Positions 26,028 through 62,279 are shown, counted from the stretch's first letter. The stretch: 64,000 bases of DNA from Oculina patagonica (GCF_052425735.1 NC_135763.1:3658001-3722000), one strand, 5' to 3'. The notes: generated by a model not told the origin, from the letters alone. Numbers and translations are program-made.

Positions 26028-26348
26028 TCACATCAGTTCGATATTGGTCAAGAGGTACCTGATTATCAGCTGTCTTCTCGACTCTGCAAGTGATATTCCA
26101 TGGCGTCCGTCTTCCTCTTCCATCACAGAACAAATCGCTGCTCGCCTGGCTGCCTCAAATTTGGGCAGTTTGTTGTTGCCGTTTCCTGGTTGTTTCACTT
26201 CAACTGCGCCTTTTCCGTTTGTTTTATTCTTGGAAAGACGTAATCGTTTTGCTCGGTTCAGATGTGAACTCAAACTTTGGCGAAATCGTCTTACAGCAGG
26301 CTTGTTCATCTGAAATGTAACAGTCTTTCGTCGTCGACTTCGCTTCAT
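26028..26348 (-). CDS. Microprotein family copy 4 (106 aa; RRRKTVTF and RRAAIC)
   Basis: ATG at 26348 aligns with the copy 1 ATG and gives the same 321-nt length. Confidence 0.7.
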   Translation of the reverse strand: MKRSRRRKTVTFQMNKPAVRRFRQSLSSHLNRAKRLRLSKNKTNGKGAVEVKQPGNGNNKLPKFEAARRAAICSVMEEEDGRHGISLAESRRQLIIRYLLTNIELM

Positions 26349-26699
26349 GGCTCCTTGCATTTGGGCTCTTCGGACTCGTTCACTTGAGTTCCGTTTAAGT
26401 AACGTTGTGTTGTGATTGTTTCGTGTTTTGAGGGATTGAAAAACAAGAACGTGATTTATCAAAACAATCAAGGTATCTTGAGTCCTCAATCTTCTCGAAC
26501 AGCGGTTGGTCGCCGGGAGAAACTCTGGGATGATGGAGATTTTTTAACCGGGCGGGGCCTGGTTAAAATTTCCGACAAGGACAAGTAAGTTTGCTCTATT
26601 TCAACTATCGCCAGCGACGGTAAATGCGATAAAACAGCGACAAGGTACATTTTTAAATTTAGACATGCGACACGGGATCTTCCTTGGCAGGGCCTCTAA

Positions 26700-27218
26700 G
26701 GGCCTGTTTACATGATTTCGGAATGACTTTCATTCCGGAACGAAACTCGTTCTGGAATGAAGTTCGTTCTGCATTTATATGACAGAGTCGCCCGGTTCAA
26801 CCAAAGGCATTTTCACGTGCGTGGTTTTCGCGCGAGATCAAAACAAGATGGCGCATGCTTCGCGCAAACATGTGTTTGTGCTCATGAATGAGTAAATCGA
26901 CCATAGAGCTGCTTCTTTGGGCTAAACAGTAAATGCTATTACGTTTTTTCGCTCTGAATTCAAACTGTGGAGTCCGTATGCGGTTTCACGAGTTGCGGTT
27001 TCATCTCGGAACGAAATTGGTTCTGTGTTTACATGGTACCAGAATGAAATGTCATTCCAGAACGAAACTTTCATTCCGGAATGAAAACCGGAATGAACTC
27101 ATTTCGGAATGACCTGACGTTCGTCTCGGTATCATGTAAACAGATACAGAGAAATGTATGGGCATGGAATGAACTCGTTCCGGAATGAAAGTCATTCCGG
27201 AATCATGTAAACAGGCCC
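26700..27218. mobile_element. PIF/Harbinger-like MITE
   Basis: taa|gggcctgtttacatgatt..ggaatgactttcattccggaacga ... catgtaaacaggccc|taa; TAA TSD. Confidence 0.85.
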
Positions 27219-28694
27219 TAACTAGCAAGAGGCAGAAGGAAGAATCCTAGCTTCTAGTTTGCCAACTTTTCTGGAGGGAATGCTCTTAAAACCTCCCATC
27301 AAGATCTTGCCTCGTCTGTGCCAAAGGTCTGGATACGGGCCTGCAAGCCACAAACGATTACAAAAAAATCATGTTGACAGGTAAAACCTCTCTTCAACAC
27401 CATGTAGAAGCTTCCACTTTACTGTCACTGATCAGGTTCCAACTTTTTGTGCTTGGTAAACAGAATAAACGTGTTAAAATGGACTGTGTGAACAGAATCA
27501 CTTAGACAGATTGGTGGCAAGATGTCCGTAACTTGACCCAATTATCACAGGATTGGTCGACTTCCAACCGAAATACAGTATTCCGATCCCATTTCGATGA
27601 TTTCATAACATTAGCAAGGTCGTCCGCAGTTTTCTTCCTACTCCTCTTGAGTACACAAGAAGTTCAGGCGCAATTGTTGTTTTTAAATTTCTGAACTTTT
27701 TTTTTAAAAAAAAAAAAAAACAATTCTACCGTCTTTTTTTAGCCTGGCAGCAAACACGTTTTTTCTTTAGTGACTGAGTGTCTTTCGACTTTGTTAACTT
27801 GTTCAAGTCTTTGAGTCTTAAGACTCGTTTTGATTTTCTGCATCAAGCGGCGCCACTAGTCTTTTCTTGCAACAATAAAGACACGAAGCCACAAGAAGGA
27901 ATATTATAACACCTGTTAGTCCTATGACGGCGGGAACGTTCATTATGTACACGGCGGCTTTATCCGGGCAAACGCATCCTTACATGGTAAAATAAGAATA
28001 CCAGAGTCGTATACTCCACAAAGCACAGCTAAATGGGAAGGACTTCCAGTGTGGTTAAAAACATAAATAACGGCTCAGAAAAGCTAGTAATAAAATAATT
28101 GTAAATGAAGTTGAAGGTCATAAATATTTAACGAAGAGCAATTGATCGAGCTTGTCCCTCTATTTGTGCACACATTGGAACAGTTAATTTATTCAAACTG
28201 CGACAAACACTGTGACAACAATATCAGTTTTTTGAGAATGAAAACTGTCAGATATTCAAAATAAACCAGTATATGTATGAAAGCATGGTGAGAATTTATG
28301 TGAGGATTGTCAGGCATCGTAGAGTTTTGATAACTCCGAACATGGAAGCATTAGAAGCCTCGTAGTAATTACACAAAACAATAAACTACCTATACCTGCC
28401 TATAGCACCTAGGATTCTATCGAAACAATTGTTATACTCAAGGAGCTTTGTTTTTGTTTTCTTCGATGAAAGTACGTTTATGCACCTTGTTTGCCAATGA
28501 AAAGTTTCCAACTGCGTTTTGAGCCACATAAATAAAACACCTTTCTCAAAGTAAAAAATCTGTCAGTTCAAAGGTACGTTTATAATAAATTGTTATTTTT
28601 TATCAGCGACGCAGGCAGCGATATGTATTTTGAGATGTGATTTTTCAGCGCTTATGCACCCTTGTTTTTATCAAAAATTCTGACAAAGGGTCTC

Positions 28695-29293
28695 TAATCC
28701 AGCATTACAACCGATTACCTGTACATTAGAGTTGACAGTATTTCAGCATTATCTATCTACAACATTAATCACTTCTACACATTAGGGTAAACAATTTTCC
28801 TCCGAGATTTGGCGTTAATCACTACACAGATACATTAGTGTTGACAGTATTCCCATAATTATCTACTTACATAAAAACATTTACACATTAAAGATAACAA
28901 TACTTCAACAGATCTATTACCAAACTGGCATTCATCACTACAGTGGCTATATACATTAAAGTTAACGACATTATAATTATGGAAATCTAGAATTCGACAT
29001 ATTGGGCTGATTTGGAACTCACAGATTTAACTCTATTTGTAAATAAGGCCGATATAACACTACCATTAATATTACTGTTTGCCTGGACGCAGACATAGTT
29101 CTATTCAATTGGTGGCTCCTCACAGTAACATAAAATTTTCAAGAAGTTTTGAGTTTTCTTGGCTGAGTTATTTACATTTTACCGCATAAGTTATATTCTA
29201 TGTTCTTGACTTTCGCCCTCCAGAGTCTTCTTTTTTTCGTCTCTTGGATTGACATAAGTTTCCCTGGACGTTTTCTTCCCCTATCCTGTTCCC
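28695..29293 (-). pseudogene. Duplicated fragment of the GPCR-2 C-terminal tail and 3' flank
   Basis: Aligns with 30418-31022; encodes GNRIGEENVQGNL then shifts frame. Confidence 0.8.
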
Positions 29294-29388
29294 ATAGATT
29301 TTTACCCAAACTTCGCTTACTGGTTTTAAATTTTGAAATAAAAAAGGGGGGCACCACATTCGTTTAGGAGCAGGAAGACCTTGTATAT

Positions 29389-29685
29389 ATAATAAGGTCA
29401 GCTTCGAGCCAAAGCGGCACATACTGCCGGAGCTTATCCCGGTTTCCTTAGCATTAAGCAGCTAGGAGTATTTCTACTCCCCCCTGGATGGGATGCTAGT
29501 CCATCCCAGGGAACCCCCCAGCATTATTTCGCCGGTACCCATTTATACACCTGGGTGGAGAGAGGCACTATGAGAGTTAAATGTCTTGCCCAAGAACACG
29601 ACACAAGTGACCCTGGCCAGGGCTCGAACCCGGAACGCTCGCTCCGGAGTCCGACGCGCTAACCATTAGGCCACCGCGCCTCCCA
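29389..29685 (-). mobile_element. tRNA-derived SINE (family A-related) with 18-bp TSD
   Basis: Minus-strand head gggaggcgcggtggcctaatggttagcgcg; TSD caggaagaccttgtatat at 29371-29388 and 29686-29703. Confidence 0.9.
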
Positions 29686-30288
29686 CAGGAAGACCTTGTA
29701 TATTCCATATAATTCCTTTATAATTCCTCTGCGAGTACTGGCAAAGTACACGTTTTTAGCGATATTTTTCATTTTAAACATAGGAATTGTTCTGTTTTCA
29801 TTTTACAGAAAGAATTTGATTGTACACCCAAAATATGAGAAAAAATTGATAGGTCACTATACTCGTTTACGAGAAAGCGACAATTTACTTCTCTCGCGGA
29901 CTAAGCCGTTTAGAAAAAAGCCGCCATTTTGTTTATGTGCACGCGCTATAAATTACGCGTAAAATTCTGCGCAGCAAGGATGCGCAATGCAATACAGGGC
30001 AATGACCTTTACAATACAAGAGTGTGTGTGAGACAATGTACCAATGATTTTAGAACCCGCAATTAATATAAACCTTATTCTTCTACCAAAGAACCGTGGG
30101 CTTTTCACTTTTTCATTATTATTTTCTCACTGCACCGATACATTAGATTTATTAGATTTAACAATATTCCAGCATTATCTATCTACTAAAAAAAAAACAT
30201 TAACATCTACACCTATACATTACCAATGTTTCGAAGGAACATAAGGTTTTGACAAACAACACGATGCTTTACAAATACATTTTTCATT

Positions 30289-30331
30289 ACAAGACGTGTT
30301 TCTGATGAAACATCATCCATCCTCAGTTGCT
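30289..30331 (-). ncRNA. Minimal type I hammerhead ribozyme motif (Penelope-type)
   Basis: Minus strand gcaa CUGAGGA ug gaug auguuu cauc a GAAA cac GUC uugu. Confidence 0.55.
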
Positions 30332-30926
30332 ACAGAAGTCGCGTTGTTGAGTGATGAGTTTGCAATAAGTAGGATTACAAAGTGTGATGAAAACTAGAAT
30401 AATTACAGGCCGGCCTGTAATCCAGCATCATCTATCTACAAGTTCAGAATCACTACACCTGCACATTAGGGTTGACAGTTTTTCAGAATTATCTATCTAC
30501 AACTTTAAACACTTCTGCACCTTAGAGGTAACAATACTTTTCATTATCTGTGGTTAATCACTACACAGATACATTAGTGTTGACAGTAATCCCAATAATT
30601 ATCTAGTTAAACATGTTACACATTAAAGATAACAATACTTTAACAGATCTATTACCAAAATGGCATTCATCGCAAGAGTGGCTATATGCATTAAAGTTAA
30701 TGGAAATCTGGCATTCGACATGTTTGGCTGATTTGGAACTCACAGATTTAACAATATTCGGAAATAAGGCCAATAAAGCACTACCATTAATATTACTGAT
30801 TGCCTGGACGCAGACACAGTTCTATACAATTGGTGGCTCCTCACAGTTGACATAAAATTTTAAAGAAGTATTGTTCTTTTCTTGGCTGAGCTATTTACAT
30901 TTTACCTGCATTACCTGCATTACATT

Positions 30927-31976
30927 TTATGTTCTTTCTTGACTTTCGCCCTCCAGAGTCTCCTCTGTTTTCATCTCTTGACTTAAATTTCCCTGGACGT
31001 TTTCTTCCCCTATCCTGTTCCCGCCCCTTCTTCCTTTAGAGCAGATTGAAACCAGGATTTTCAGGTAGCCATCACGGTAATTCTTGTTGCTCAGCCCATA
31101 AATGAATGGATTCAAACAACTGTTGACAAAAACCAGAAGAGAGAGGATGTGGTGCAGTTTGGTATCCAGCCGGGTTTTTCCCGCCATTGCCAACGCGTAG
31201 TTTGTCTGACTTGGCGCGAAACAAACGATCAGCATAATGCAGGCGGCACCGACCATCCGCGTCATTTTCCCGCGCATTTTAGCCCTGCTTTCAGCTGAAG
31301 CCACTGTGGACTTGCTTGTCTTGTAAACCATGTGGACGAACAAGAACAGCATGGTGAAGCTTGGAAGCACCATTTTGAATAAGACTTGAATGACACCAAC
31401 AATACCGCGGACTGGTTGTTTACCCCAGAAAAGCTGCCATTTGCATCGTCGATTTGGAGGATTTGAGGAAACATATCCAACTTCGAACAGAGAGGTGCAA
31501 CAGAGAATCACCGACCACAGCCACACAAGGAAGATGTAAACCAGGGTTCGCTTCTGGTTGAAGGTCTCGCTGTATTTGTGAGGCTTGATCACTGCGTACC
31601 ACCGTTCCGTCGCCAAGGCCATACAGATATACGCCGAGAAAACCACCAGTTGGAAGAGAAACACACGGCTCCATATGACTCGGCAGAATATGTCTCCCAG
31701 AACGAGATTGGTTGGATAAGGAAACGCGTCACCAAGAACAAAAGCTGGGTTTGTGATGAGCAGGATGGCGGTCAGGACATCAGATATGGCCAAGGACAGG
31801 ATTAACATGTTGTATGACTTCTTCAAAAGCTTCTTGTCCCACACGAAGACAAGAATGACTAAAGTGTTTCCTATCAGACCTACGACGGCCAGGATGGAGT
31901 ATGTTGTACGTGTGAAGGTAGTTATTCCAGGTGGAGGTTGGTTCGGTGCAGCTGTGGACGAGTTAGAGATGTTCAT
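30927..31976 (-). CDS. Class A GPCR paralogue, 349 aa (GPCR-2)
   Basis: Same 7TM motifs as GPCR-1; N-terminal half almost identical. Confidence 0.95.
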   Translation of the reverse strand: MNISNSSTAAPNQPPPGITTFTRTTYSILAVVGLIGNTLVILVFVWDKKLLKKSYNMLILSLAISDVLTAILLITNPAFVLGDAFPYPTNLVLGDIFCRVIWSRVFLFQLVVFSAYICMALATERWYAVIKPHKYSETFNQKRTLVYIFLVWLWSVILCCTSLFEVGYVSSNPPNRRCKWQLFWGKQPVRGIVGVIQVLFKMVLPSFTMLFLFVHMVYKTSKSTVASAESRAKMRGKMTRMVGAACIMLIVCFAPSQTNYALAMAGKTRLDTKLHHILSLLVFVNSCLNPFIYGLSNKNYRDGYLKILVSICSKGRRGGNRIGEENVQGNLSQEMKTEETLEGESQERT

Positions 31977-32675
31977 ATTTGCCGGCAGGAGAAGCCCTCG
32001 ACTGCTGAGATAACACTCTAAGTTATTTCTTGGTGTTCACATTAACTATTCACAGGTATAATTTGCAATTTCAGATTTCCCTCGCCTTTCATTATTCTTC
32101 CTTTGATAAATCTACAAGAAATAAAACAAGGAGATAATGGTCATTAACACGCATCTTAGAGAAGACGCATTCCTACCTTGATATTTGTATTGTGTCTTGA
32201 TGCTGGACCATCGATATTAGCCCAGCAACGCTTTTGAGTTGACCCTAAACCATTAAACCGATTAAAACTGAATGACAGTCTTAAACGGAAATTATCACGT
32301 CGCTCTTGTAAAACAGCGATCTATTCCATTTGAGTACGGCTACAAGTCTGTGATTCGTCAACAAGAAACCAGAAAAAGCCACTAAATAACTAAATATTTT
32401 GACAGTGTTTAAGATTCCGTGCGTTAAAAACAGTCTATTGACTGACTTGCTTCCTTGTATGAACTCAGTGAGTCAAAGCTTTCAAATATTTTCAGTATTT
32501 TTTTTTTGAAGAAATCGCTTCAATGCAAGTGATTTCCCTGGTTAGTTCGGAATCAAATCAAGATCTTAGGAAACCCAAATTGAATACTGTTTTCAGTTTT
32601 GAGGAATTTACGATCAATGGCGAGGTTCAAATGGAAACACGACATGAGCACACAAACGTGAAAATGCGAAGATAA

Positions 32676-32919
32676 TAGAGAGATTTAGCATGACGTTATA
32701 AGGCAAATGGCAAACGCGAGCTTGCCTTTTATTTTGTTACCTTTATATCGAATTCTAAAATTAATCGCCCATAAAAACAGGGAAAAAATCCCACATTCAC
32801 AACAAACACAAAACTACTCATTTTTGCATATGAACGCCAAACCGCAGACGGCAGAAGTTAAATTTTTCGAGTATTTTTGCCGTTCGCGGGAAAAATAAAC
32901 GTCATGCTTAACCTCTCTA
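32676..32919. mobile_element. MITE
   Basis: tagagagatttagcatgacgtt ... aacgtcatgcttaacctctcta. Confidence 0.6.
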
Positions 32920-33624
32920 AAGTTTGCACGCGTCTCTTTTTGCCACGCGGAAAATGATACTTGCATCATTTTATAAAAAATTATTAAGTTTTTATTCCAT
33001 AAATCGTGGGAATTTTTTTTCCTTTTTCAGCCGACTTTAACGGTTAATCTAATAAGCCGTAAGAGCAGGCCTTGGATTAAACTTGTTTGGAAGTAGATTA
33101 TTTAGGACAAATTAAAAAATCAACTTTGCAAATATTTCAAAGGAGTTTTCTTCAAATGTAGATCAGTGGATCTAAAAAGATTCGAAGGAAAGTGTGGTTT
33201 CTTCAGATTGTCTTTATATGAACAAGAAGTTATTCGCTTAACTGCTTTTCGCCCAGTTCAGCAAAAAATCTTCAACACCCTGATTAATGATCAACTAATA
33301 GCATTTTTCAGCTGTGGTCAACGATTTCAGTTTTCCGCCGTTTATAGTTTAGAATTGCTCTGTAAGCGAGTGAACGAAAATATTTTAGTACCGACAATTT
33401 AGCAAACGATATGGCATGAATCTTCGTTTCTTGAAAGCAGATCGTTCGTAAAGTTGACCGTCTCACTCAGTAGAAATCCAACTCAGTCACTACTTATACA
33501 ACAACAACAACCACTTTACTTTGCCAAAATAAATAGAAATAATTACAGCATAAAATAAATTAACCAAAAGAGGCAAAAAAACTACCCAGAATATATATTT
33601 CCAATTACCCCCGATCTGCTCCCG

Positions 33625-33720
33625 TCTGGCCTTGTAGCCCAGTCGGTAGAGCAAGGGTGATCTAATGTGGAGGTTCTGGGTTTGAATCCTGCTGCGGTCA
33701 AAGAATTTTTCTTTGCCTCG
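33625..33720 (+). mobile_element. Decayed tRNA-like SINE head
   Basis: ggccttgtagcccagtcggtagagca...gggtttgaatcc. Confidence 0.5.
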
Positions 33721-33823
33721 TTTAGTACCCGATTTCCTTTATTGGGCTTAACGTCAGAAGGGAATCCTGGGTTATTTTCCAGCACTATAATTTACCTTAG
33801 CTAACTCTTTTCTTTCCAACTTA

Positions 33824-33960
33824 CCAGCAATGTTCAAAACTTTTACTAATCTTTTACTGCTCCGCTTATTCCTCGGTGGCTGTACGGTTTAATCCAGAAA
33901 ACGACCGGCCGTAAATTTTAACCATCTGCGGATCACCGTACCGATTGATGTTTTCCATCT
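33824..33960 (-). other. Probable non-coding 5'UTR exon of GPCR-2 (start approximate)
   Basis: Donor cattgctg|gtaagt; homologous to 14010-14154; acceptor ttcttgtag| at ~32112. Confidence 0.55.
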
Positions 33961-34603
33961 AGATGAGCTTTCAGTTGCTGTGATCTGCTTTATAGTAAGA
34001 CAAATGATATGTCAGTATGGAAAAGGGTTTTAATGCTAGCGTTGATTTATAGTTGTTAATTTCATTTCACATCCATTCACCTGCCCTGATACCGGCATTA
34101 AATGTATAATGCAGCCTTTCATTGGCCCACAGGTACGAAGTGATATGATGACGATGCATTGGGTGACAAGAGAAGATATCCTCTCTTTCGGATAATTACT
34201 CTGACTCATTGTTTTTCAGTTAAAACTCTGATTCATTGTTTTTCATTAAAAACTTTAGTTTGATGAATAAATCTGTACTAATGGTCGTAACAAACAAATT
34301 TCAGCTATGGTCGGGAAAGTACAAAAGGCTCAAAAGAACAGCTACTTTATAAAATATATTTTCTTAAGGCAAATAAATCAAAAGCACAAATGTACTGAGT
34401 TAAAGCATTCAGAAATCTGAAGTACAATCAAGACTCTGGCTTTGTTTTCAGATTAAAAAGAAATGCTGTTCGCCTTAAAAGAGGCTTTTTAATACAGAAT
34501 ACGGTAAGACGAAAAAACCTCTCAAAACAGAGTCAAGCAGAACGTTCTTCACATCCTGCTTGTTCAATTTTTAAGACCGACAACTTTCAGTTTACAGCAC
34601 TAC

Positions 34604-34782
34604 TAGCCAGCATAGCTTGGCGTTCTAGTCAGTCGGGGAGAGCGAGAAATCGCGCGCGCGAGCAAAAGCGACTTCTAGTCAGTCGGGGAGAGCGAGAAAT
34701 CGCGCGTGCGAGCGTCGCTTTTGCTCGTGCGCACGATTTCTCGCTCTCCCCGACTGACTGGAACGCCAAGCTACGCTGGCTA
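34604..34782. mobile_element. Palindromic MITE with 9-bp TSD and internal arm duplication
   Basis: tagccagc.tagcttggcgtt... / ...aacgccaagcta.gctggcta; TSD cagcactac at 34595-34603 and 34783-34791. Confidence 0.85.
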
Positions 34783-39940: not shown

Positions 39941-42886
39941 TTAGTCTTAATTTTTCAAGTTGTAATCTATTTCTTTTTTAGCCATCTGCAGCAAAGGGCG
40001 CTTGTAAATAATTTCAGTGCTCTATGGCAATTGTTAATGAAAATAGACCATTATCTGAAGGTTTCCTACGACCGAATATATATTTGGCTGTTCAAAAACC
40101 TGTTAAAATTTACGACAAAGCCCCTTCAAGTTATATTGAAGTTTTCTTTGTTTCTTCAGATGGAACAGATATAAAAAAAAAAAGAGAATGCAAGGGGTCC
40201 GATCCGGAGTGCAACCATTATGGGTCAAAGTGACGATGGTGTAGCTGTTGGATTCTGAAGCAAGTTGACTGTTGGCAACTTCGTTTTTCGAAGATAAGTC
40301 AATTGTTTTCTTACTTCTTCTGTACAGTTTCGCTGGGGGATCGGAGTGTACGTACTGTTTCAAATTAAAAAGCAACAGTTGTAAAGTATTGCGTAAAGAA
40401 TACTATTACTGGAGAGTAATGTCTAGTCTCTGTCTTACCATAGTTAATAGAGGGAACTGGTTATGAAGCTCGGTAAACATCAAAGCAGAAAACAAAGAGG
40501 CCAAGATTTAGGTTGAAAGGTCCACGAAGGTGCACATCTTTTGTTTTTCACTCATACACTATGCATGAATTACGTAATCGCAATCTTTCTATTGGTTAGT
40601 TGTATGAACACACGTAACCACCTATTATGTTTCGCCAGGTTTTGTGCACTCTCAACGCCCAAAATAGCGAACAAAAACCTACAACAAAGAACTTTGCGGG
40701 GTTTCATAACCATTTCCCTCTATTAACTATGGTCTTACTGACAAAACCAACACTAAGAGATTTGGTAGGCAACCCGTAATTACTGAAACGTAATTTCTGA
40801 TCCTGTTCATAATCAGTTCAGGTGTCACATGAAGTTGTTGAATATTATGTTCACTTTTCTTTGTACAATTTTAATGTTAGTCGAATGACGCATTGGTCGA
40901 TAAACAAACACGAAAATGTGTTAACACCTTAAGGGAATTCAAACAAAAAAAACTCTCTTGTCAACCCATTCCTTGCAACTCAAAATGCATGAATTAAAAC
41001 TTAAACAGTTACTTGAAACAGGCCTTGGACTGTTAACAGCTCATCAACTCCTCGTCATTGCTAAAATTTGTTTAATAACAACTATGAAATGTTACAGACA
41101 CCTTGATAATTTGACAAATCAAGAATGTTAGAAATCATCATTATTGTCGTTCGTTTTTAGAAGGATTTAGTTAAATCACAAGGGATAGAGAAAAGAATCG
41201 TTTTTTATAACTTGTACAAAGAGTATCGTTATTAATAATGTATGTTCAGTTAATTTTTCTATCAAACATGTTGAGGTGATAAACACCAGGAGGATATTGT
41301 CTTGATTTACTGCCAAAATCTCACAAATAACATTGAAATAAATGTACAGCAATCAGTCAGCAGAACAGATATTTTGATCTAGTATTTTTTTATCTAGTAT
41401 TTTGAGCGTCATCCGTGTGACGTTTCTGTAGTACGAACCAAGCCAAGAACAAAAGCTAAAAACAAACTTAAACTAACCTGTTCGAAAACTTCTCAGGGAA
41501 GTATTTGTAGTGTTTACAAAAAAGGATTTGTGATTGTTCTGAATTTGAATTCATTCAAAGAAACATGCAGCTTAAAACATACTTACGTTTCTTTGTAAAC
41601 GATAAAATTGGTAACTTTCTTATAAAATGATTGGTAATTTCTTGTAAGACGATTTGCGTATGAAATGACTGAAATGAAATTAATCACTTGTTTTGAAAGG
41701 CTTGGAAAGGCGTTTTTTAGCTGATTCTTGCTTATTATAAAAGAGAATTTGTACCGTTTATGTATTTTAGGACTTTGATGCCAGAAAAAATTCAGAGTAC
41801 AACTTACGGCTCTGTAGCATTTTTTTGTCGTCGGGAATATATTTGGAAATATTCAAATATTTGGAAACGTGTGTAAATTTGTTTTTCTTTAGCAATAAAT
41901 AAAGTAAGTATCAATAACATGAACATAACATTACTTTGACTTAACTTTATAAATAATGTATTTTCTGTGTGTTTGATTCTGTCGGCCATGGAAATCTTGG
42001 ATTTGGCTCGACAAATGTTTTCAAAACGCTCACCACAAAAGTTTAATAGTGGGTATTTATACGCCTGATGTAGCAGTATATTGAATGGAAACAAGAGTTT
42101 GGTGCGGGTTGAACCAGCGCATACTTCTTGAACTTTTCAAACACAAAAGGAACAGCCAAATTTTGTCAGATTTTGCAGTTCAATTTTTCCATTTATCAGT
42201 AATAATAGGAGCTTTAACATCTTAAACGCGGCTTCTAATATATCAATATTCTCTCGATATAGGAACGAAGAGAGGAGATGGATGTTGCAAGAATTGAATA
42301 GTGAAGCATCACAAACGTATAGAATTGAGCATGAAGAATGTGTCAAATTAAACTTTAATAAGACTGTTGAAAAAAAGGATTGGCTGCTTTTTGTCATCTT
42401 TCGTTACATGAGTTTGCTTATTTACCGAGAACTCAAAATGGCGGTATTTACGGAAGCCAATATTGACAATGAAATATTACTATTTCATGATTATTCCTAT
42501 TACATGATTATTATTGTTATAAGTTTCGCTTTAGTTTAGTTGTACGCTTTTGCAATACTGTATTTACTTTTAGTCATGCAAATAAAGCTTGTTATTGTTG
42601 TTGTTGAATCAACAAAAAAAGAACTGGTTTTAAGTTGGGTAATGCAATACAGAAATTAAAATAACTTTCGAAATTCAACTCGTGTAAAGAAGGTGTAAAG
42701 AGCATAATAAAAGAAAACGGATGAAACGCTCTTAAAAGCTTTCTACTAAAAAAATAACTCGTAATTGAAAATAAAATATAATAAAAGAAGACGTGCGTTC
42801 TAAAGGGAATGCTGCGTCAAAACATGTCTCCTTGTGTTCTACTTAACTGGTATGTCAAATGTTCGAACAGCCTTTTAGGAACTCCA

Positions 42887-43391
42887 GAGTGAAGGGTGGG
42901 AGGAACAACGACTCCCCCACACCCTTCTCCCACTCCCCTCCGGAGAAGGAGAGAGTGAAGGGGGAGGTACTCCCCCACACCCTTCTCCCACTCCCCTCCG
43001 GAGAAGGAGAGAGTGAAGGGGGAGGTACTCCCCCACACCCTTCTCCCACTCCCCTCCGGAGAAGGAGAGAGTGAAGGGGGAGGTACTCCCCCACACCCTT
43101 CTCCCACTCCCCTCCGGAGAAGGAGAGAGTGAAGGGGGAGGTACTCCCCCACACCCTTCTCCCACTCCCCTCCGGAGAAGGAGAGAGTGAAGGGGGAGGT
43201 ACTCCCCCACACCCTTCTCCCACTCCCCTCCGGAGAAGGAGAGAGTGAAGGGGGAGGTACTCCCCCACACCCTTCTCCCACTCCCCTCCGGAGAAGGAGA
43301 GAGTGAAGGGGGAGGTACTCCCCCACACCCTTCTCCCACTCCCCTCCGGAGAAGGAGAGAGTGAAGGGGGAGGTACTCCCCCACACCCTTC
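42887..43391. repeat. 58-bp GC-rich minisatellite, ~8.5 copies
   Basis: Unit gagtgaagggggaggtactcccccacacccttctcccactcccctccggagaaggaga; units identical from ~42911. Confidence 0.95.
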
Positions 43392-46300
43392 CTGGATTAA
43401 TTTATTCATATATTCAGGAAACAGAAAAGCGAAACAGCGGTGTCTTCTGTAATATTGGCGTTGTCATCGTTTTTTCTTTTACATTTAAATTTTGTTTACT
43501 CCGTGTGGCAACTCGTCTAAGAAGATTTAACAGCTAGAGATATATACTTCCTTAGTGGGAGGGGCTGTTTATTCCATGTAAAATTTTCAACCTTCTTTGA
43601 GCCGATAGTTAAGGGTTGGAAGTTAAACGTTTACCCTCAAACCTCTCCCGCTCTCAAGGGAGACAACTGAAACTTGAGTTTCAACTCCCTTCACAATCAT
43701 CCCAATTTTAGAAGTGAAGATTACTAGAGAGAATATTTCTCCTATCCACAATCGTCCACTATACCAGATTAGAAGACTGTTGGTTGAAGTTTAAACTTCA
43801 TCTACTAGCATTCATTCTCCAATCCAACGTCCTTCGCTGTCTCAGAGGTGAACATGTTGGGAGGGATTGCAGCCCTATCCACAATCCTCCTCTCTTACAT
43901 TGAAAATGGTTGAGATTGTGGATGAAGGTTACACTTCTTCCCACTGTCCTTTCCTCTGGAAAGTGCAGGATTGTGGAAGGGATGAAAAGGTCCTTCCATA
44001 ATCTTCTCCTTTAGGAGAATGAAGATTGTTGATGAAAGTTAAACTTGCTCAATGGGAAAGTAGGGATTGTGAACGAGAGTTAAATTACCCCATAATCCTC
44101 ACTTCTAGGTAACGTGGAGGATTGCGGGCAGCCAACTGTCTCCCCAGGAAGTTGGAGGAATGTGGATCAGAGTTAAATTCCCTTCCATAATCTTCCCCCA
44201 ATGAAAGTGGAGAATTTTTAAAGGGAGTGACACTTTCCTCCACAGTGGGCATATATATCCCTTCTTGAAGAACTTTCTTTGGGCAAAAGGGAATTGCTCA
44301 TCGGAGTAAACTAAATTTAAATGTAAAAGTAATGGACAGCGACACAAGTTTCATCACATTCACTTTTCAAGTGACGTGGTAGATTTATATCCTTATTATT
44401 TTTGTGACTTAGTCAGGTTACATTAAGAGCATTTGGGTCAAGCCTTTAATTTGCTCTTAGTATCTTCTTTACAGTCGTGAAGTTGATTTTATTTATATTG
44501 ACTCATTTATTGTGGCGATTACTGATAAGAATAAGGATTAAGGATGACTCACTGTACAATAAAACTATTTTCTCCGTCAAGTTTACAAAGCCATATTTAT
44601 CAATTGCCAACCCAGCAACGGGCGGTGTTTTGACATATTCCTGACACTCTTTACCGAAAAAAATTAATATCCAAAAGAACAAGAGAGATGACTAAAACAC
44701 AACTTAGCTAACTTTTTTTAAAATACAAATGGCATTTGTTTGTAAGTTATCATTGAATTATTTTTTTGTTTATTTTTTTCCTGCTTTTTCTCATTGTTTT
44801 TTACATTCATTATATTTTTTTCTCTCTTCAACAAGTTATAAAAACACATGTGAAGTAAACATCTCCTATAAGGTACAACATGTCAAACATTTGAAACGAT
44901 CCCTTATTTACACTCAGTGTTTGTATCATTATTACTGTTGTAATTACAAAGTGTGGTTAAAAGTCCTGTCGGGAATAAACGACGTTTCCAAGCGTTCTTC
45001 TACGTCTCGTTAATTCACTCAGGCGCCGTGTTGTTGTTTATTTTCTTGATTGTTCCCTCCCTGAGTACCTGCTGAGAGGATCAAACATTGACAATATATT
45101 AGAACACATAACCTAGAATAAAGGTAAGCAATGTAAGAATTAATCATAAATGCAGCTATCAAATCCTGGGATCGTCCTGTTGTGTTTTAGTCATTAAATC
45201 TCATTTCATTGTGCTGTCGTTTGCTTTTATAATTATAAAATAAGACTAACTTTCATTCGAAACGAAATAAAACGTTCCTTTACTGACAAGTACGTAATTT
45301 GTTGTAAAGAAAAATAGTAATTTCTATTTCACCAACATTTAAAATACCCAAGTTAGAGTGATCAAAATCTAATTTCTCTTTTTTGAGGGCAAGAAACAAA
45401 ATTGAGATTAACAGCAGGAGAAAAATTACCCAAAATTGTTTCGCCTTAAAGAAACAATCTATTAGGAGATTTAACATTGCATTTGCATAAGTTGCAAGTG
45501 ATGAACAAGACTACAGAATTTCAATTTGGACAAATTGAGTTATTCTACCAACTCTACGCATTGCAATTAAATCAAACAAATTCTCAGTTGCTTTCCTTTC
45601 ATTACAAATCTTACTTGTTAATAGCAATTCTCCATACTACTGTATTCGCCATATTTTTCAAAATTTTACCAAATGTTAGATGAATGAATTTACTCCTACA
45701 TCGAGATAATATTTAACAGTAAGTTAATTTATATATTTCATATTTGACAGCGTTATTTGCGATTTCCATATTTATTCATGATCATATTTGACAGAATTGA
45801 TGATTTTCTCATATAACCTCTTTTTGGAAACTGTATATTGACATTGTAAAGGAAAAATAGAATTTGCATCTCACTTTAATACTAGGTTATCCGAAAGTGA
45901 ACATGTAATTGTTAAAGGCGCTGTTATTATTGACATGCCACTAAAATCACTGCAGATGTTTTTAAAAGTCGGTGAATACTTTGTATGCATTTTGCTATCG
46001 ATATAAGTTTCTAGTACATTGTAATCAGAAAATTTAGTTGTGAAAAGTTGAAAGTTCTCTTACACCTATTTAAAGTTTTTTTTTCTCGCAATTTTACTGA
46101 GCGTTGCTGTATAATTTATAAATTGTAACATAATTTTTTCTCATTATTCTCATGCAAATTGATAACGATGTTCATCTTTCGTCAAGTTCGACTCTTAAAT
46201 GCAAATAATTGGTTTCACAAATGACACATAAGCCTGTTTATTTTTTGCCCGCGAATTGAAAATTTCTCCAATCGAATAACTAGTAATTTGTAAGAAAAAT

Positions 46301-49182: not shown

Positions 49183-49223
49183 GCCCCTGAGGAAGGTTTG
49201 TTCTGCAAACCGAAATATAGGGC
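49183..49223 (+). ncRNA. Minimal type I hammerhead ribozyme motif in a Penelope-type terminal repeat fragment
   Basis: gccc CUGAGGA a gguuug uucug caaacc GAAA uaua gggc. Confidence 0.6.
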
Positions 49224-54171: not shown

Positions 54172-54275
54172 CAGAAGCGGGAGCACATGGAAGAAGATGA
54201 AGAACTCAGCTTCACAGCACACAGCGGTGAACAACACCAAAATGATCGGCGTGTCCTTTGAGACTTCTTTATATA
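54172..54275 (-). promoter_or_regulatory. TATA box, initiator and short first exon
   Basis: TATATAAAG at 54275-54267; TCATT Inr with A at 54243 (TATAAAG at -30); donor CTG|gtaagc at 54172/54171. Confidence 0.55.
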
Positions 54276-57200
54276 CGCGATTAAAATTCATCGCAGCTTC
54301 GACTTTTGTACATTAAATGAATAAGAACTTAACAAATGTCGCTTGAAAAGCATGCACTTTGAATATTAATGAGGAATATTATTTCTGTTAGAAATTTATG
54401 GTAGAAGTCACAAAAGTGTGTCGCTGAATTGAAAAAAGTTTTGGCGGGGTTTAAAATAGGGTGATGAGAAGTGGATTGTCACTGTTGCGTAATTTAACGT
54501 GCGTAAAAAATATGAAATAAACGTTAACGTTATATCTTTTGAGTGGATAGACATATTTCAAAAATGTTTCCGGCAGTTTTGAGATCCTTGTGAAAGGTGT
54601 TTTAAATAGTATCATTAGATATCCCATATTACTAAAACCAAAATTTGGCGTCAATTTTGTAACGTCATTTTCCTTCAAAAATGTCAAAATCTTGCAAACT
54701 GTTGTATCGATCCATACTCTTTATTTTGACTCCTTGATAGATTCTGTAGTGTTCCGCACTACAGAAATAGATCAATGTCCGCACTAGACTCCTTTCCGTT
54801 CTCTCTGATTCCTTGCGCGCGTTTTAAAGTGTCAATCACGAGACTCGACTCAGACCTCGCAGGTCAAAATCGGCCCCAGTCCCTAACTTATTTACAACAC
54901 AAACTAACAAGATAGGATTTTAGAGAACGACGAGTTGTTTATTGGCGCCCAGTTATAGGATAACTAATTTAGCACTAAGGACGTTATTTACACCATGAGT
55001 GCATCCCAGGCTCTCTATCCTTTCCTCCCTAGTCGGGTTCCCGTCGTCGTTGTTACTGATATGACAATTGAATTAGTAAATGGCAATTTATTTATTTTGC
55101 TTATTTAATAAATCCCTTTTACGCTTTTTCTTCTAGTTATCGTTCGCAGTCGAACGATGACTTGACATACGCGCTATGAAAAAATAATGAAGTTTTTTAA
55201 GTTGATCAGGTATTCTTAAATATGAGAAGATATTGCTCTTTCAAAATAACTATAATATGGACTGAAGAGACCATTTAAAATTAACTGACTGTGTTCAAAT
55301 CAACTTTGTGATCTTGCATTTGAAAAATGAAAAATAAAGGGTGAAAATCTGCCAACTTCAAAGTTGTTATACTTGCAAACAATTTAATCTATTTAACTGA
55401 AACTTTGTCAGTCAGTCTCACTCTGTTACAGACTGTTATTACATATTTGAGCCCTAAAAAACTCCTAGCACTTATTCTCTTGATTGTTTAACTACAAAAA
55501 ATTAACTTTCATAGGTTAATTATTACCAAAAATCATTTATGACGTCATAACTCCATAGACGTTCACCTGACAATCAAAATCTCATCAACAGTGGAGAGCA
55601 AATTCTGTGCTCTTAAAAACCATATATAGTTTACCATGCTTTCAACTGTTAGTTGATACCAGTGACAACAAACCTTCTTAGAAAATCCCACAACAACAAA
55701 AAACGGTTAAAGGGTTAAGTGCTAATCGTTATCTGGATTTTTAATCGGGCGTGGCCGATTTATAGTTTACCCTTTGGTCGTCCTAGACGATAGTCTCCTG
55801 TCGGCTAAAAATGACGGGGATAGCCTGGGCCAATCAGTTTCATTTCAGTTTTGACAGTAAATCGTTGTAGGAACACTGGGTCGACTTTTGGGCTAATCTG
55901 CAATCTGGTTCTCTTCTTTGCTTCGGCGGGAGGACAGAGAAAAAAACTTAAGGGGGTAAAGTACTAATAATCACCATTGTGAAACTGTAACTTTGACAAC
56001 TTTGACAAGTTGAAGCTATTTTTGTAAATAAAAGGGGTAACGTCATTCATGTCACGCAATGTTTTTGTGGGAAACTTTAAAACTAGACGCTTTGCTGATT
56101 TCTACAAATAGCAGTGTGATCTGGCGGTACATTTTTTTGAGGCGGACTCCACTTTAAAACTATTTTTTATATATTTAGCAAGAAGTATGTCGATTTTCAT
56201 TTCCGCACAGTGGGGCGTCAAAGTCGCCTGTCACAAAGAGTAGAATGTTTGCACAAGTTGGTTTGGATGTATTTTAGATTTGACTGGTGACGTTAGTAAG
56301 ACAGTTCTCAAGACGTCAGCTAAACATTGGCAATGTACAGTATTGGTGTGAACTTGAATGGAATTTTTTTAAGAGATCAGTAAAGCTATCGAATGAAAAG
56401 ATGACTTGAAAATGAAAACTTCGAATAATTATAATTAAATACCAATTGAATTTTAGATGAGAAATTCCGGAAGTGACATCTGTGTTCAAAATAGGAATTT
56501 TTGTACAACTTAGTTCCGAAAAAAAGACCACATGTTTTGTAAAAATTACAGACAAACATGATCAGGAAAACAAAACAGGCCAATGGGTTTTATTCACGAA
56601 AATACAACTTTGTTAAGAAAGAGTTTGTAAACAAGACAATGGAATCGAATTACATTTCACACGAAATTTGCATACATTTGAACTTGCAAAAAAGAAGTAT
56701 CTCTGCCGAGACATAATAGCGAGACCTTACATAAATAATTATTGTATTCTGATCTGATTGTTATTTTTTATGCATTAACTATTTGAAAGTGGTTCTCATC
56801 GATGAAAACAAAACGGTTTTTCATTCACTGCTTGAAGTATTTATAGACGTGAAAACATTCGCTTAATCAAATTACATTCTGCACGAAATATTTTGTATCC
56901 ATTTGTCCCGAAACTTTGAGGAAATTGAAATCTTTGTGGACAGTACTGCATAAAAGCAGTTCATAGAATTGAATAAAAAGATAAGAACCATATTGATAAA
57001 GGAAATTTTAAAACTTTATTTTGGCTCATTTTGACGAAATTCAGGATTTTCAAAGACTGCCAGTAAACGGCTGTATCTTGTCTGTCTCTAACGATTTTGC
57101 TACGGTTTCAAACGAGCTAATGTTTCAACATGATATCATGGTAGCGGGCAGAAGTCGGTTCGTTCTGAATTTTTCATTACGGTATACAAGTTACAGGTCA

Positions 57201-57548
57201 ATATACAGACCCTCTGTATAGTAAAAAACGTTTTGGGAACAAACCATTGTGAGCTTATTTTCTATGTTGATCAGTAAAAATCATTAGTACGACATGGGGT
57301 TTGTTATCAAGTTCGTTAGTACGTTAATACTGCAAGGTGTATAAAAGTAGAGAATTATTATCAAGTGTGTTTTGTTTTATTAGCGGTTTATACTCTAAGG
57401 TCTTGGTATGGGAGATCAAAATTAAGGCAAATTTCTGGTATTATCTGATTGCTTGGCAAAGATTAGTACGATACTGACTTGGTTAGGAAATGTAAACAAA
57501 CATCAAATTGAATAAGAGTAGAAAGGGAGGGACAGGTGGGGGTGAAAG

Positions 57549-58136
57549 TAGGGCTTTCCACAAGTTGCTCGAGATTTCCCAAAAAATTGCCCGTAATTTC
57601 TCAAAAAGTTGCTCTAAAGTTGCTGCAAAAATTCAAAAAAGTTGCTTCTGACAATAAAAGTTGCTCGAAAGTTGCTCCAAAAAAATCCAAAACGTTGCTT
57701 CTAATCAAGAGAATTTCTCTAAATATATGCTAATTTCCCTTTGAGGGTTAGATTCCTAAGCAGTTTTCTGCAATTTTACAGCAAAAAAGTATCTAAATAA
57801 CATATTAAGGAGAAAATTTGTTAAATAACAAGGTTTTCTTTAATTGAGAAAAATCGCGAAGATATCGATGACGTTATGTTTGCTGACGGCAGAATGAGGC
57901 GAAAGTTGAAACGTCTTTAGATGTTCCTCGAAAATCCTCGGGAAACTTCGTAAATCTTCGGAAACGTTCGTATGCCCTTTGAACAACACTCGGATAATCT
58001 TCGGAGATCTTCGGTCTGGAAATTGCACAAAATGTAACAAGTTGCTCGAGAGGAAAAAAGTTGCTCGAAGGAGATAAAGTTGCTCGAAATATTAAAAGTT
58101 GCCAAAAAGTTGCCGAGCAACTTGTGGAAAGCCCTA
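57549..58136. mobile_element. hAT-like MITE with 8-bp TSD
   Basis: ggtgaaag|tagggctttccacaagttgctcg ... cgagcaacttgtggaaagcccta|ggtgaaag; subterminal aagttgct repeats. Confidence 0.9.
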
Positions 58137-59709
58137 GGTGAAAGGCTAAGGAGATGGAAAGGGAGGGAGAATTAAAATCCATGCTTGGTTATATCACACA
58201 ACCTTTGACTTCTGTTGTTTTCTCACAAGAACAAAACTTAAGGTGGGGTTCTACCTGAATTTGAATGGAACTTTAAGAGATTTAAAGAAGGGATTGAAGA
58301 AAAGAATGGAAACACCTCCAAACAGTTGACCCCCTCGCAAGAGCACTCCGGGTTGTCAGGAGACTGTTTGGTGTCCGTCCACCAATTTTTAACTTCAAAC
58401 TTAACTTTTAACTTTTTATCTCCAATATTTCTTATTTGTCTAAATTTTACTAATCCTTTGAGAAAAACTATCGCCTCCCAGACATCCCCCAAAATCGTCC
58501 AAAAATACAAAAGACGACTAATTCAATCGTTTATTTGTATTGCCGTGCGAAATATATTTTTATAAATTGAGACCATTATGTCATTAAGTAATAATGCAAT
58601 ATTGAAAACATTCCAGATTTTCATTATTAAATAGAAACACGAAAAATTCAAATTTGGGAAAACAAGCCTGTCAAAATGACGTTGCCATGGTGATTCAAGT
58701 TACTGGCACAATAACTAATCCTGCCAAATTATTGCGAGATAAATTTTAGATAAACGCGCAAAGTTTGGCAGCGTTTGGTTGAATTTTGAAAAAGTTATAA
58801 GCGTCCAAAGTCAGCGCGGGCCTCAAACCCCCCCCCAGCCCCCCCGCCCAGAATAGGTTTAAGTGACTGTTTTTCCAGTGATTTTTACTGTACTGTACCC
58901 TGCCTTTCAAGTCAAAACAGATAGCTAATTATTAAGCGCCCGATTTTAAGCTTCTCAAGCTTCTCAAGCTTCTTGTTTTGACTAAGAACTACAAGGAAAC
59001 ATGTTACATGACAAGAAACACCCAAAATTTTCGCTGCCGTCAGAAGTTCATTCAGTACCACGTCCGTTGCTTTTTTTAAAGAGCTAGAAACTACTGTTAG
59101 ATTCATTGCGATTCAGAAAAGGAAACTTGTGGCGGGTTTGTTTTTTGCTGCTGTTGTGTTTGTTTAGATGTAAAACATTACAGATTACCATAGCAAGTAA
59201 TTAAATGGTTATAACGATAATTGAGTTACCTATAACTACATAATTATCAGGCTTCCGTAGAAATCGGCGCCATCTTTTTATTTTTCAACTTCTTTTTGAC
59301 ATCGTGTGTTCTTCAACAATTTATCCATTCGTTTAGGTTGATATTTTCCCCTCAGTTTGCTGCTTGTTATTTCAGTCGAAAGGCCAGCAATCTTTATATT
59401 ATGATGACTTCTTTTCCATCGGCGTTGTTTAACAATAATTAATAATAATAAATGAACTTATATTGCGCAAGTATCAGTTAGCGATTTTCACCTGCGCTTT
59501 ACAATATTTGTAAAATTAAAAAGCCCTTAAAATTAATTTTGCCCAATCGGGTTTTCTTTGGATTGTTTCATCTCTTTTTATCACTTGCCGAACAATTAGT
59601 ATTGATTAGTATTATTAGAACGTTAACAACAAATCAATTTGCCAAAATAATAATAATATTTTGCCAGAACGTTTTAGTATGTAGCTGACACGAGTGAACG
59701 ACATTAAAG

Positions 59710-60015
59710 ATGGAAAAGGCTGAAGTATCTCGCTCGAGACGCTGGAGGTTCTGGTTAGGCCAAAAAGAAAGATCGCAAAGATTGCAAATCTCGAAATGCG
59801 AGAATGCAGAAAGTGATGGAGTCAAGACGGAAGGATCGCCACGTTCGACTGATACAAGAAACATCAGCAACCAGCCGCCGAATTTAAAACTGAGTAGACG
59901 ACCAGCAATTTGCACCGTGAAAGAAGAGGAAGACCAGCACCATGGAATATCACTCGCAGAGTCAAGAAGACGGCTGATTATTGTATATTTCTTGGACAAG
60001 TCCGGACTGTTATGA
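59710..60015 (+). CDS. Microprotein family copy 5 (101 aa; RRPAIC; no RVxF segment)
   Basis: Paralogous ORF, NQPPNLKLSRRPAICTVKEEEDQHHGISLAESRRRLIIVYFLDKSGLL. Confidence 0.7.
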   Translation: MEKAEVSRSRRWRFWLGQKERSQRLQISKCENAESDGVKTEGSPRSTDTRNISNQPPNLKLSRRPAICTVKEEEDQHHGISLAESRRRLIIVYFLDKSGLL

Positions 60016-61952
60016 TAATGAGAACTGAACTGAAGCGTTTGGAGAATGTTGGCTTGTAATCCCATAGAAATGATGCCATCGAAGAAGAAGTGAACAGTTT
60101 CCTTTTTTCGTATTTACATCGAGCATGACCTTAGTAGTTTTGACTTAACTCAGTGAATTAACACAGTTGTAACTCAGTTTCGAATTAACTCAGTCGTGTA
60201 TCAGTCGTGTAACCGTATAATTAGGGCAATAATAAGGTGAAGGAAATATGAAGAAGAGAATACGAAAGACCGGAATGTGAAGAGGGAAATATATGGTCCA
60301 TTGTCAAAATGGCCGTAGTCCCGTCCCCTGTCACAATCAAAGTCGCCTCACAGCGTTTTGCTAACCTGCGATCAGGCGCGCGTTCTTTTTGTTCGCTGCG
60401 GGAGGAAAGAGAAAAAAAAAGAAACGCCTGACAAATTTACTTTACGAGTGGTCTGCCAGCCCCGTATTAAAGTATCTGTCAACGGGAATGTCAGCGATGC
60501 TTCCCCAACCCGCAACTAAAATTAGTAGCCGCTAAAAATAGTAACCTTTAGATAAGTTTTAGCACTTGCCTGCGGCTCGGACTAAAATCAGCCTGAGTCG
60601 GACCAAAATCATATTTACGCCCGCCGATATCAACTCTCCTCATTCTGTCATTTATTAAAGATATTAAGGTACATTTTTGGTATATAGGTTGGAAAAAAAG
60701 AAGGGTCTTTTGATTGTCACACAGAAGAGAGTAGTTTCGCTTGTTGTCCCGACAAAGCTCACGGCCTTCACAACGTTAACAGAACTTCGTATTGTAAGCA
60801 TGTTGGATGAAAAAATTATGGGCGAGCAATAAAACATTATAACTGTGAACTGCGAAACAAAGCTTTTTGATGAAAAGGAATTTCCGAGGCTGTTTCAGAC
60901 TTGCTTTGCAGTGCTATTTTTAATTATACGGAATTCCTCGAATAAGCGCCACATCAGGAAATTTTGTCCCAAACGTAGCGCTTATACGGGGGCGGCGCTT
61001 ATTCGACTAAATACGTTACGCGCATGCTTGAATTAAACTGTGCTCTTTGTTCGTCAGCCAATCAAATTCACCCGCTCCCGACCACGGGAAAAACTGTACG
61101 TGTCACAAGAAGGTCGGTTAAGTTGTGGAAGGTGGCCTTCCGACGGAACCACGTTCAGAAATGGCTGACTGTGTGAGCCTCTGCTCTTCGATTAGAAACA
61201 ATTTCTTCAACAAAGCCGCGCAGTAAATATAAGGCGGATAGGGCTGGAGCAAGTCGGCATGTTTCTTTGTCCTCATAGCGGGGCCTGGGTACAGTGACGA
61301 AATGCTGTCAATCAACCTATTGCTAAGAATGGCATCTTTGCTATATTCCTCGCTTATTTCGTGCGCTAAGGTTGAAGGCCTAAAAAATTCTCTGTTGTAA
61401 TCCTTAAGATCTGTTTGCTCTTTAGCTAAATATCTAGAAAAGCAGCTTTAAAGTCGTGAAAGAAGCATGACAAATTATTTTTCTCTATAAAATATAAAAA
61501 TTTCTCTTTAGCAAGTTGTTGTTTTGTGTTTTGCATAGGTGAGAAGATCTCGGGAAAACGCTGTGACAGAATTTACCCGTCGACTCATTTTGCATACAGT
61601 GAACTGACACGCGTACGCATTTTTCGGCAAACCTATCATTCAGAATTCTAAGTTTCAGAATTCTAATCGGATTTCTAAAGAGGATAAACCCAAATTCCCA
61701 AGGTTTATTTGGACGTATATATATACACTGTTTTTACATATTAGGCTACTAAGCGATCTTGACAATCGTGAAATGGATCAGTGATGTCATCGTGGTTGTT
61801 TACTAGATGTCGATCTAAGCCGACTGAGTTCAAAACTACCAAGTTCATGCTCGATGGAAACTAGAAATATAAACTGTTCACTTTGTTCAATGGCATCATT
61901 TCTCTAGATTACAAGCCAACATTCTCCAAACGCTTCAGTTCAGTTCTCATTA

Positions 61953-62279
61953 TCACAACAGTCCGGACTTGTCCAAGAAATGCACAATTATCAGCCGTCT
62001 TCTCGACTCTGCGAGTGATATTCCATAGCACTGGTCTTCCTCTTCTATCACAGCGCAAATTGCTGGTCGTCTGCTCGATTTAAAATTGGGCGGCTGGTTG
62101 CTGATGTTCCTTGCACCAGTCGAACGTGGTGATCCTTCTGTCCTGACTCTATCACTTTCTGTTTTCTCGCATTGCAGTTTCTCTTTTCGGCGTAAAGAAG
62201 GCTTCAAACTTCCCCAGCGAGACACTTTGGCCTTTTCCAGTTGAAATGAAACAGTTTTTTTGCCTTGTTTTTGTTTCAT
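61953..62279 (-). CDS. Microprotein family copy 6 (108 aa; KKTVSF and RRPAIC)
   Basis: ATG at 62279 (MKQKQGKKTVSF) aligns with the MKQS/MKRS starts of copies 1 and 4. Confidence 0.7.
   Translation of the reverse strand: MKQKQGKKTVSFQLEKAKVSRWGSLKPSLRRKEKLQCEKTESDRVRTEGSPRSTGARNISNQPPNFKSSRRPAICAVIEEEDQCYGISLAESRRRLIIVHFLDKSGLL

Follow-up and report, generated by a model that had tools for sequence, protein, structure and literature searches.

The specificity of protein phosphatase 1 (PP1) derives from hundreds of partners which bind through short motifs, and almost all of these have been charted in vertebrates and yeast. Among the closest described systems, inhibitor-1 and DARPP-32 (PPP1R1A/B, PF05395) are small disordered proteins which carry an N-terminal RVxF-type motif, KIQF, and a downstream arginine-rich site, RRRRPT; it is the phosphorylated threonine that makes inhibitor-1 inhibitory. 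Inhibitor-3 (PPP1R11/Ypi1) has its motif at 40-KVEW-43, places 54-GRR-56 and K59 in the acidic groove of PP1, and holds 60-CCC-62 over the active-site metals (PMC10066265). In human PNUTS (PPP1R10) the RVxF motif is 398-TVTW-401 (bioRxiv 10.1101/2023.09.20.558696). Here these proteins, together with the protein kinase A (PKA) inhibitor PKI, are compared with a tandem cluster of small genes in the coral Oculina patagonica. The cluster lies in a stretch of 64,000 nucleotides (nt), NC_135763.1:3658001-3722000, referred to as the window, from the start of which all coordinates are counted. The window holds seven intronless paralogues (copies 1 to 7) and one truncated fragment, all on the minus strand with the exception of copy 5. 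Copies 4 and 6 encode a strict RVxF-class motif for docking on the PP1 catalytic subunit (PP1c), which appears to be recently gained and is predicted to dock, a reading which is credible but advanced tentatively. The more notable result is the family to which the copies belong, an unannotated anthozoan family with an invariant RRxA[IV]C tail.

Two definitions of the motif were applied, a loose one, [RK]-x(0,1)-[VI]-{P}-[FW], and a strict one, [HKR][ACHKMNQRSTV]V[CHKNQRST][FW]. Both are matched in copies 4 and 6 and in the relatives P0002, P0049 and P0060, and these five are the only strict matches among 49 rows of the small family, always at the same aligned site. Copies 1, 2, 3, 5 and 7 have no RVxF motif. 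A sequence-only reading of the window had reported KTVTF in copy 4, KTVSF in copy 6, RKTVSF in the fragment, KTVSS in copy 1 (TCT in place of TTT) and KTDLS in copy 2, and each of these motifs is found in the sequence at the coordinates it gave. The motif lies in a basic N-terminus which is predicted to be disordered, this region being coil in a structure model of copy 6. Serine or threonine occupies the x position in more than half of RVxF regulators (PMC10066265). The equivalent residue here, along with the RRRKT context in copy 4, could allow a kinase to switch docking off.

Docking was modelled with residues 1-45 of copy 4 and residues 1-300 of a 325-amino-acid metazoan PP1-beta-like open reading frame (ORF) from a metagenome contig (L065). 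This ORF was taken because the PP1c genes of the Oculina genome are multi-exon, split by introns. The complex gave interface scores (ipSAE) of 0.85, 0.85 and 0.84, against 0.00 for the best control; in calibration, 51 of 78 solved complexes and 2 of 108 mismatched pairs attained the mark used for this score. For the partner, the predicted local distance difference test score (pLDDT) was no lower than 45, and agreement between runs was 38% of contacts or better. In the confident interface, residues 7-15 of copy 4 (RKTVTFQMN) contact PP1c residues 165, 167-168, 241-242, 260 and 287-292, which in the model form the canonical RVxF groove. Copies 4 and 6 would dock by placing Val10 and Phe12 in the two hydrophobic pockets of this groove, which the remaining copies would be unable to do. 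The T-V-T-aromatic core of RRRKTVTF in copy 4 resembles the TVTW of PNUTS, whose motif is reportedly also preceded by basic residues. The likeness is confined to the short motif, as the coral protein has no PNUTS domains and the modelled contact has no PhiPhi-Phe-Arg extension. The model suggests that the copy 4 motif is structurally competent for the PP1c groove, which is short of showing binding. Of the PP1-docking motif first proposed from the sequence, the strict match, its disordered basic setting and, for copy 4, a modelled fit to the groove have stood up, whilst physical binding is predicted only.

The copies are real, fast-evolving genes, as judged by a shared stop, colinear loci in other corals, selection and an unspliced contig over copy 4. 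The seven ORFs, of 101-117 amino acids, can be aligned over their full length and end at a common stop position. The same genes are present at colinear genomic loci of related corals, with several copies in one locus (L002) and a single copy in another (L001). The ratio of nonsynonymous to synonymous substitution rates (dN/dS) is around 0.4 in the copy 6 clade over a synonymous divergence (dS) of 0.5-0.7, and 0.6 between copy 4 and its orthologue in a congener. An unspliced 821-nt contig from a probable RNA run spans copy 4, following the genome colinearly between 25928 and a point past 26600. When the 529-Mb genome was searched in six frames, nothing was recovered beyond the seven copies and one distant paralogue of 173 amino acids on another contig. 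It was also considered that the copies might be alternative first exons, spliced at an AG/GTACCT site near the end of each ORF to shared downstream exons. This was rejected because the stop falls at one shared position in all copies and in the distant paralogue, because the C-terminal module lies at the extreme C-terminus in 85 representative clusters, and because the probable RNA contig runs colinearly straight across the AG/GTACCT site.

The history of the motif can be followed at the fifth leader position. In a column alignment this position is serine in most clades (KTVSS, KTDLS, RTNLS, KN[IV]LS, RNGLS and ATNSS), and phenylalanine is present only in copy 4 and its orthologue and in the group of copy 6, P0049 and P0060. 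Copy 1 has TCT where copies 4 and 6 have TTT, so that its KTVSS is one base from KTVSF. On a tree built with the motif columns removed, two changes between phenylalanine and other residues are needed, and copy 4 groups with copy 1 and P0038, which both have KTVSS, in a clade that is well supported. An approximately unbiased (AU) test rejects a single clade of the phenylalanine-bearing rows (p 0.008, or p 0.004 with P0055 and P0065 added), albeit with groups chosen after the tree was seen, which weakens the test. The phenylalanine is most likely derived and lineage-specific, with two gains by TCT-to-TTT change from a KTVSS-like leader, since under parsimony an ancestral phenylalanine would need three or more losses.

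Copies 5 and 7 are inverted duplicates of each other. Both lack exactly 47 nt which are present in copy 6 and in the fragment and which span the ATG through KTVSFQ, and a new ATG is formed at the deletion junction, AAAGA/TGGAAAAGG. P0039, an orthologue from another species that is about 83% identical to copy 7, shares this deletion. Because copies 5 and 7 are inverted duplicates and P0039 has the same deletion, the loss is one old event. The phenylalanine would thus have arisen twice and been removed once, in copies 5 and 7. The absence of the motif segment from these two copies had been noted correctly; the proposal that an ancestral PP1 arm was repeatedly lost is contradicted by the serine in most clades, the two changes on the tree, the AU test and the single shared deletion. 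In the window copies, P0040 and P0165-P0178, the variable KTVxx site is followed by a second, conserved leader block, K-K-x-A-V-[ST]-x-W-R-x-L-K-S-[YF]-F, which is retained even in copies 5 and 7. In copy 3 the first ATG is 27 codons into the listed ORF, the same situation as in the relative P0003, and the product of copy 3 would therefore be without the whole leader.

Evidence for constraint on the motif is mixed. Between copy 6 and P0049/P0060 the string KTV[ST]FQ is fully kept, in an N-terminal segment of 25 amino acids which is otherwise about half identical. The N-terminal 60 amino acids of copy 4 have a dN/dS of 0.94 against the congener orthologue, based on few changes, and are nearly neutral; retention of KTVTF in the congener is therefore uninformative. 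Among orthologues, KTVxF is kept in the copy 6 clade and, uninformatively, in the copy 4 orthologue, and is absent from most other clades.

Several observations weigh against docking of copies 4 and 6 on PP1c, the near-neutrality of the copy 4 N-terminus being one. The complex score may reflect recall of the many solved complexes of PP1 with RVxF peptides, the performance of the complex tool on peptides and disordered chains is uncalibrated, and the model concerns copy 4, the case for copy 6 being one of motif identity. RVxF-like strings often fail to bind. About 90% of small-family members lack the motif, and a canonical RVxF equivalent is missing from the long paralogues; the motif is therefore not part of the core function of the family. 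As for expression, the RNA status of the run behind the contig is a guess, and copies 1-3 are without read cover.

A chance origin of the motif is the alternative that survives best. KTV[ST]F would then have drifted neutrally out of a fast-evolving leader (KTVSS, KTDLS, KNILS and others), and the proteins would not bind PP1 in vivo; this is a serious, if somewhat doubtful, possibility. The loose pattern arises in 11-13% of composition-matched shuffles, and the KTVSS precursor is one transition away, a single C-to-T in the serine codon giving phenylalanine. The near-neutral half of copy 4 and the rarity of the motif among relatives point the same way, as do the intact ORFs that copies 5, 7 and P0039 keep despite its deletion. 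However, no more than about 1% of shuffles contain the strict pattern, which was nonetheless gained or kept at the same site in two lineages; KTV[ST]FQ is fully conserved across a dS of 0.5-0.7 in the copy 6 clade, and the basic flank, the disordered setting and the confident docking model also argue against chance.

A second alternative, which appears unlikely, is that the segment serves mainly as a phospho-acceptor for a basophilic kinase and that its fit to RVxF is secondary. In copy 4, RRRKTV matches the PKA pattern R-R-x-T-hydrophobic with its threonine as acceptor, and the segment would be homologous to the RRRxS[ST][VA] site which in many long paralogues lies 13-25 amino acids upstream of RRxAIC (RRRNSTVTW, RRRYSTVTFQELK and RRRSSAFQ). 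Upstream RRRxS sites of this kind occur in several long subfamilies, and RRRYSTVTFQELKLP of P0104 is close to RRRKTVTFQMNKP of copy 4. Homology of the N-terminal leader to the long-form site is without statistical support, however, and the copy 6 clade loses the basic cluster (GKKT, QVKT, HVKT) but keeps KTV[ST]FQ. A phospho-acceptor would in any case be compatible with PP1c docking, as RV[S/T]F motifs controlled by phosphorylation are common (PMC10066265).

What the copies share with their relatives lies at the other end of the protein. When 1.84 billion representative proteins were searched with a profile, 85 representative clusters matched, and in almost all of them the module ends at the last residue or two. 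It comprises 39-41 amino acids, with RRxA[IV]C followed by an acidic run, Gx[ST]L and an amphipathic helix ending in LL; in most sequences checked the RR is 39-41 residues from the C-terminus. This module is the sole invariant part of the family, whose members range from 62 to 625 amino acids and include Nematostella A7RPG0, a Stylophora LOC and an Oculina hypothetical protein. The window proteins, of about 100 amino acids, are intrinsically disordered members of this unannotated anthozoan family. In the copy 6 model there is no secondary structure before residue 89, and a single confident helix, at residues 89-105, stands in a chain that is otherwise coil; in the long-paralogue model, helices cover the last 50 or so residues with a pLDDT of around 80, and one of them includes RRHAIC. 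Searches against known families and folds gave no assignment. Pfam returned nothing above noise for the seven copies (E<=10), the long paralogue or 10 long relatives, a profile search of PDB sequences found no match to the family, and a fold search with the long-paralogue model found none either (Foldseek E>1; VIA Z<4). A protein atlas gave no usable match (scores <=0.81); MACIR and INKA1 are no more than leads.

Within the module, the position after RRx is alanine, or rarely glycine, across the roughly 170 family sequences seen, with serine in P0084 (RRGSIC) and threonine in P0173. In the window it is alanine in every copy but copy 7, which has glycine. The cysteine and the acidic run are invariant throughout the family. 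Many long members possess a true RRRxS site 13-25 residues upstream of RRxAIC. The distant paralogue of the six-frame search is encoded by an ORF at 1495-2016 on the minus strand of its locus (L010; G000:C5:13633316-13633546) and its conservation extends across Scleractinia, with identity falling to 47%. The C-terminus of this paralogue is nearly invariant, RRRSSAFQRLxNWVKPExRRxAICEQMEREIETRGVSLRQYRKFLATTYILYDLKML, and includes a PKA-type RRRSS site. About half of its orthologues have [RK]L[IV]NW, which fits the loose RVxF pattern.

By analogy, we infer that the module acts either as a kinase pseudosubstrate or as an inhibitor-3-like blocker of the PP1 active site, and both comparisons appear to fit the invariant core better than inhibitor-1 and DARPP-32 do. 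The RRxAI core resembles RRNAI of PKI (PF02827) and RRGAI of the inhibitor site in the PKA subunit RI-alpha. It shares with them arginine at P-3 and P-2, alanine at P0 and isoleucine at P+1, in a small disordered protein with a helix beside the core. This R-R-x-A-hydrophobic core, with its non-phosphorylatable P0, is nearly invariant in the family, and the module could act on a basophilic kinase, for instance PKA, as a pseudosubstrate; it is a candidate for kinase binding only. There is no Pfam homology to PKI, the helix is C-terminal to the core here and N-terminal in PKI, and the coral family has in addition an invariant P+2 cysteine and an acidic run, with the core of the long paralogue modelled inside a helix. 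Alternatively, the module could act as inhibitor-3 does, with the RR in the acidic groove and the cysteine at the active site. Both proteins are disordered, with an RVxF motif followed by RR, and have a cysteine four residues after the second arginine (GRRSSKC in inhibitor-3, RRxAIC here); the RR-x3-C spacing thus equals that of R56 to C60, and the cysteine is invariant in the coral family. There are also differences. The PPI_Ypi1 family (PF07491) gave no Pfam match, there is one cysteine here against three, the gap from phenylalanine to cysteine in copy 4 is 60 residues against 16 from tryptophan to the first cysteine, and most coral family members have no RVxF motif. Contact of the module with PP1 is a possibility suggested by analogy. 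In either case the second arm, RRxA, is a fixed element and not a phospho-switch, because the alanine or glycine position is non-phosphorylatable.

The cluster also contains a possible link to cAMP. The window contains 7 occurrences of the palindromic cAMP-response element (CRE) TGACGTCA, where 0.75 would be expected, and the elements at 20008, 22356 and 25140 share a nearly identical context of about 60 nt within the tandem units of copies 1-4. A congener and a more distant coral retain the element (L001:1757; L002:1666 and 3308). This conservation hints at a cAMP link and proves nothing. An inhibitor-1/DARPP-32-like arrangement with an ancestral PP1 arm, in which RRPA stands for RRPT at a PKA-controlled site, would draw on this hint, on the disordered character shared with inhibitor-1 and on the bipartite layout of copies 4 and 6, with an N-terminal RVxF followed by RRxA, but it is very improbable, as there is no DARPP-32 Pfam match (E<=10), the phospho-acceptor is replaced by alanine or glycine family-wide except in P0084 and P0173, the RR begins about 56 residues after the motif here against about 22, and the RVxF is found in 2 of 7 paralogues and is non-ancestral, the phenylalanine being derived and the loss in copies 5 and 7 a single event. 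Thus neither the inhibitor-1 architecture nor the PKA phospho-switch that had been read from the sequence is upheld, the likeness amounting to a small disordered protein with an RVxF motif and an arginine-rich site.

The cluster is accompanied by a variety of other elements (Table 1). Two intronless paralogues of rhodopsin-family G-protein-coupled receptors (GPCRs) flank the subcluster of copies 1-4 in inverted orientation. The truncated fragment next to copy 6 is 87% identical over 129 nt to the 5' end of that copy and is probably a pseudogene fragment. A tandem array with units of about 78 nt separates this fragment from copy 7.

Table 1. Positions of the paralogues, their motifs and neighbouring elements in the window.
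Feature	Position	Strand	Description
Copy 1	20933-21253	-	106-aa ORF, N-terminus MKQSHLKTVSS, no RVxF; C-terminal module 20936-21052
Copy 2	23273-23602	-	109-aa ORF, N-terminus MEQSQLKTDLS, no RVxF; C-terminal module 23276-23392
Copy 3	24376-24729	-	Aligned site RTNLS; C-terminal module 24379-24495
Copy 3, 5' part	24646-24729	-	CTG in place of the initiator ATG of the paralogues; first ATG 24648 (MPAVSG...)
Copy 4	26028-26348	-	106-aa ORF from MKRS; further in-frame ATG at 26360
KTVTF of copy 4	26313-26327	-	Residues 8-12, preceded by RRR; strict RVxF match
RRAAIC of copy 4	26130-26147	-	C-terminal module 26031-26147
Copy 5	59710-60015	+ (inverted)	101-aa ORF, start MEKAEVS; C-terminal module 59896-60012
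Copy 6	61953-62279	-	108-aa ORF, start MKQKQGKKTVSFQLEK..., core RRPAIC; C-terminal module 61956-62072
KTVSF of copy 6	62244-62258	-	Residues 8-12; strict RVxF match
Truncated 5' duplicate	62482-62616	-	44-codon ORF MKQKQGRKTVSF... then stop; no C-terminal module
KTVSF of the fragment	62581-62595	-	Residues 8-12 of the 44-codon ORF; reads RKTVSF
Copy 7	63658-63963	-	101-aa ORF, start MEKAKVS; core RRPGIC (Gly at the Ala position); C-terminal module 63661-63777
CRE TGACGTCA	20008-20015, 22356-22363, 25140-25147; also 37326, 46599, 50941, 55540		Palindromic element
GPCR paralogue	15864-16937	+	Intronless; 7tm_1, E 8e-30
GPCR paralogue	30927-31976	-	Intronless; 7tm_1, E 2e-32
Interspersed repeat	23840-24100		High-copy; contig word depth in the thousands in all four runs; many rearranged joints
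Tandem array	62791-63211		Units of about 78 nt (4-6 copies); related 64-nt pieces at 62327 and 62671
Overlapping ORFs	42817-43409	-	Over a tandem repeat encoding reiterated GEGCGGVPPPSLSPSPEGSGRRVWGSTSPFTLSFSGGEWEKGVGEYLPLHSLLLRRGV units; probably a repeat element rather than a gene
Reverse-transcriptase fragment	3686-4288	+	RVT_1, E 8e-5; retroelement remnant

The most far-reaching reading of the module would make it a new cnidarian class of phosphatase or kinase regulators. With the RVxF acquired in copies 4 and 6, it would form a bipartite PP1 inhibitor of the inhibitor-3 type, the RR lying in the acidic groove and the cysteine over the active-site metals. This proposal, drawn from analogy, is improbable as a whole. 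If it were true, the inhibitory warhead would stay fixed across the cluster while a PP1 anchor was added or removed as a module, and the conserved CRE palindromes of the tandem units would point to a possible cAMP-induced feedback brake. No such regulator is annotated in cnidarians within the resources searched, and a literature search found no report of a cnidarian PKI or an invertebrate inhibitor-1.

The narrower reading, that copies 4 and 6 dock on PP1c through a recently gained RVxF motif, has implications of its own. If docking is true, the coral cluster would provide natural variants with and without RVxF on one scaffold, and a comparison for the birth and loss of PP1 partners. Meanwhile, the family itself is unannotated and widespread in anthozoans, and its conserved RRxA[IV]C tail resembles a kinase pseudosubstrate or a phosphatase active-site blocker.

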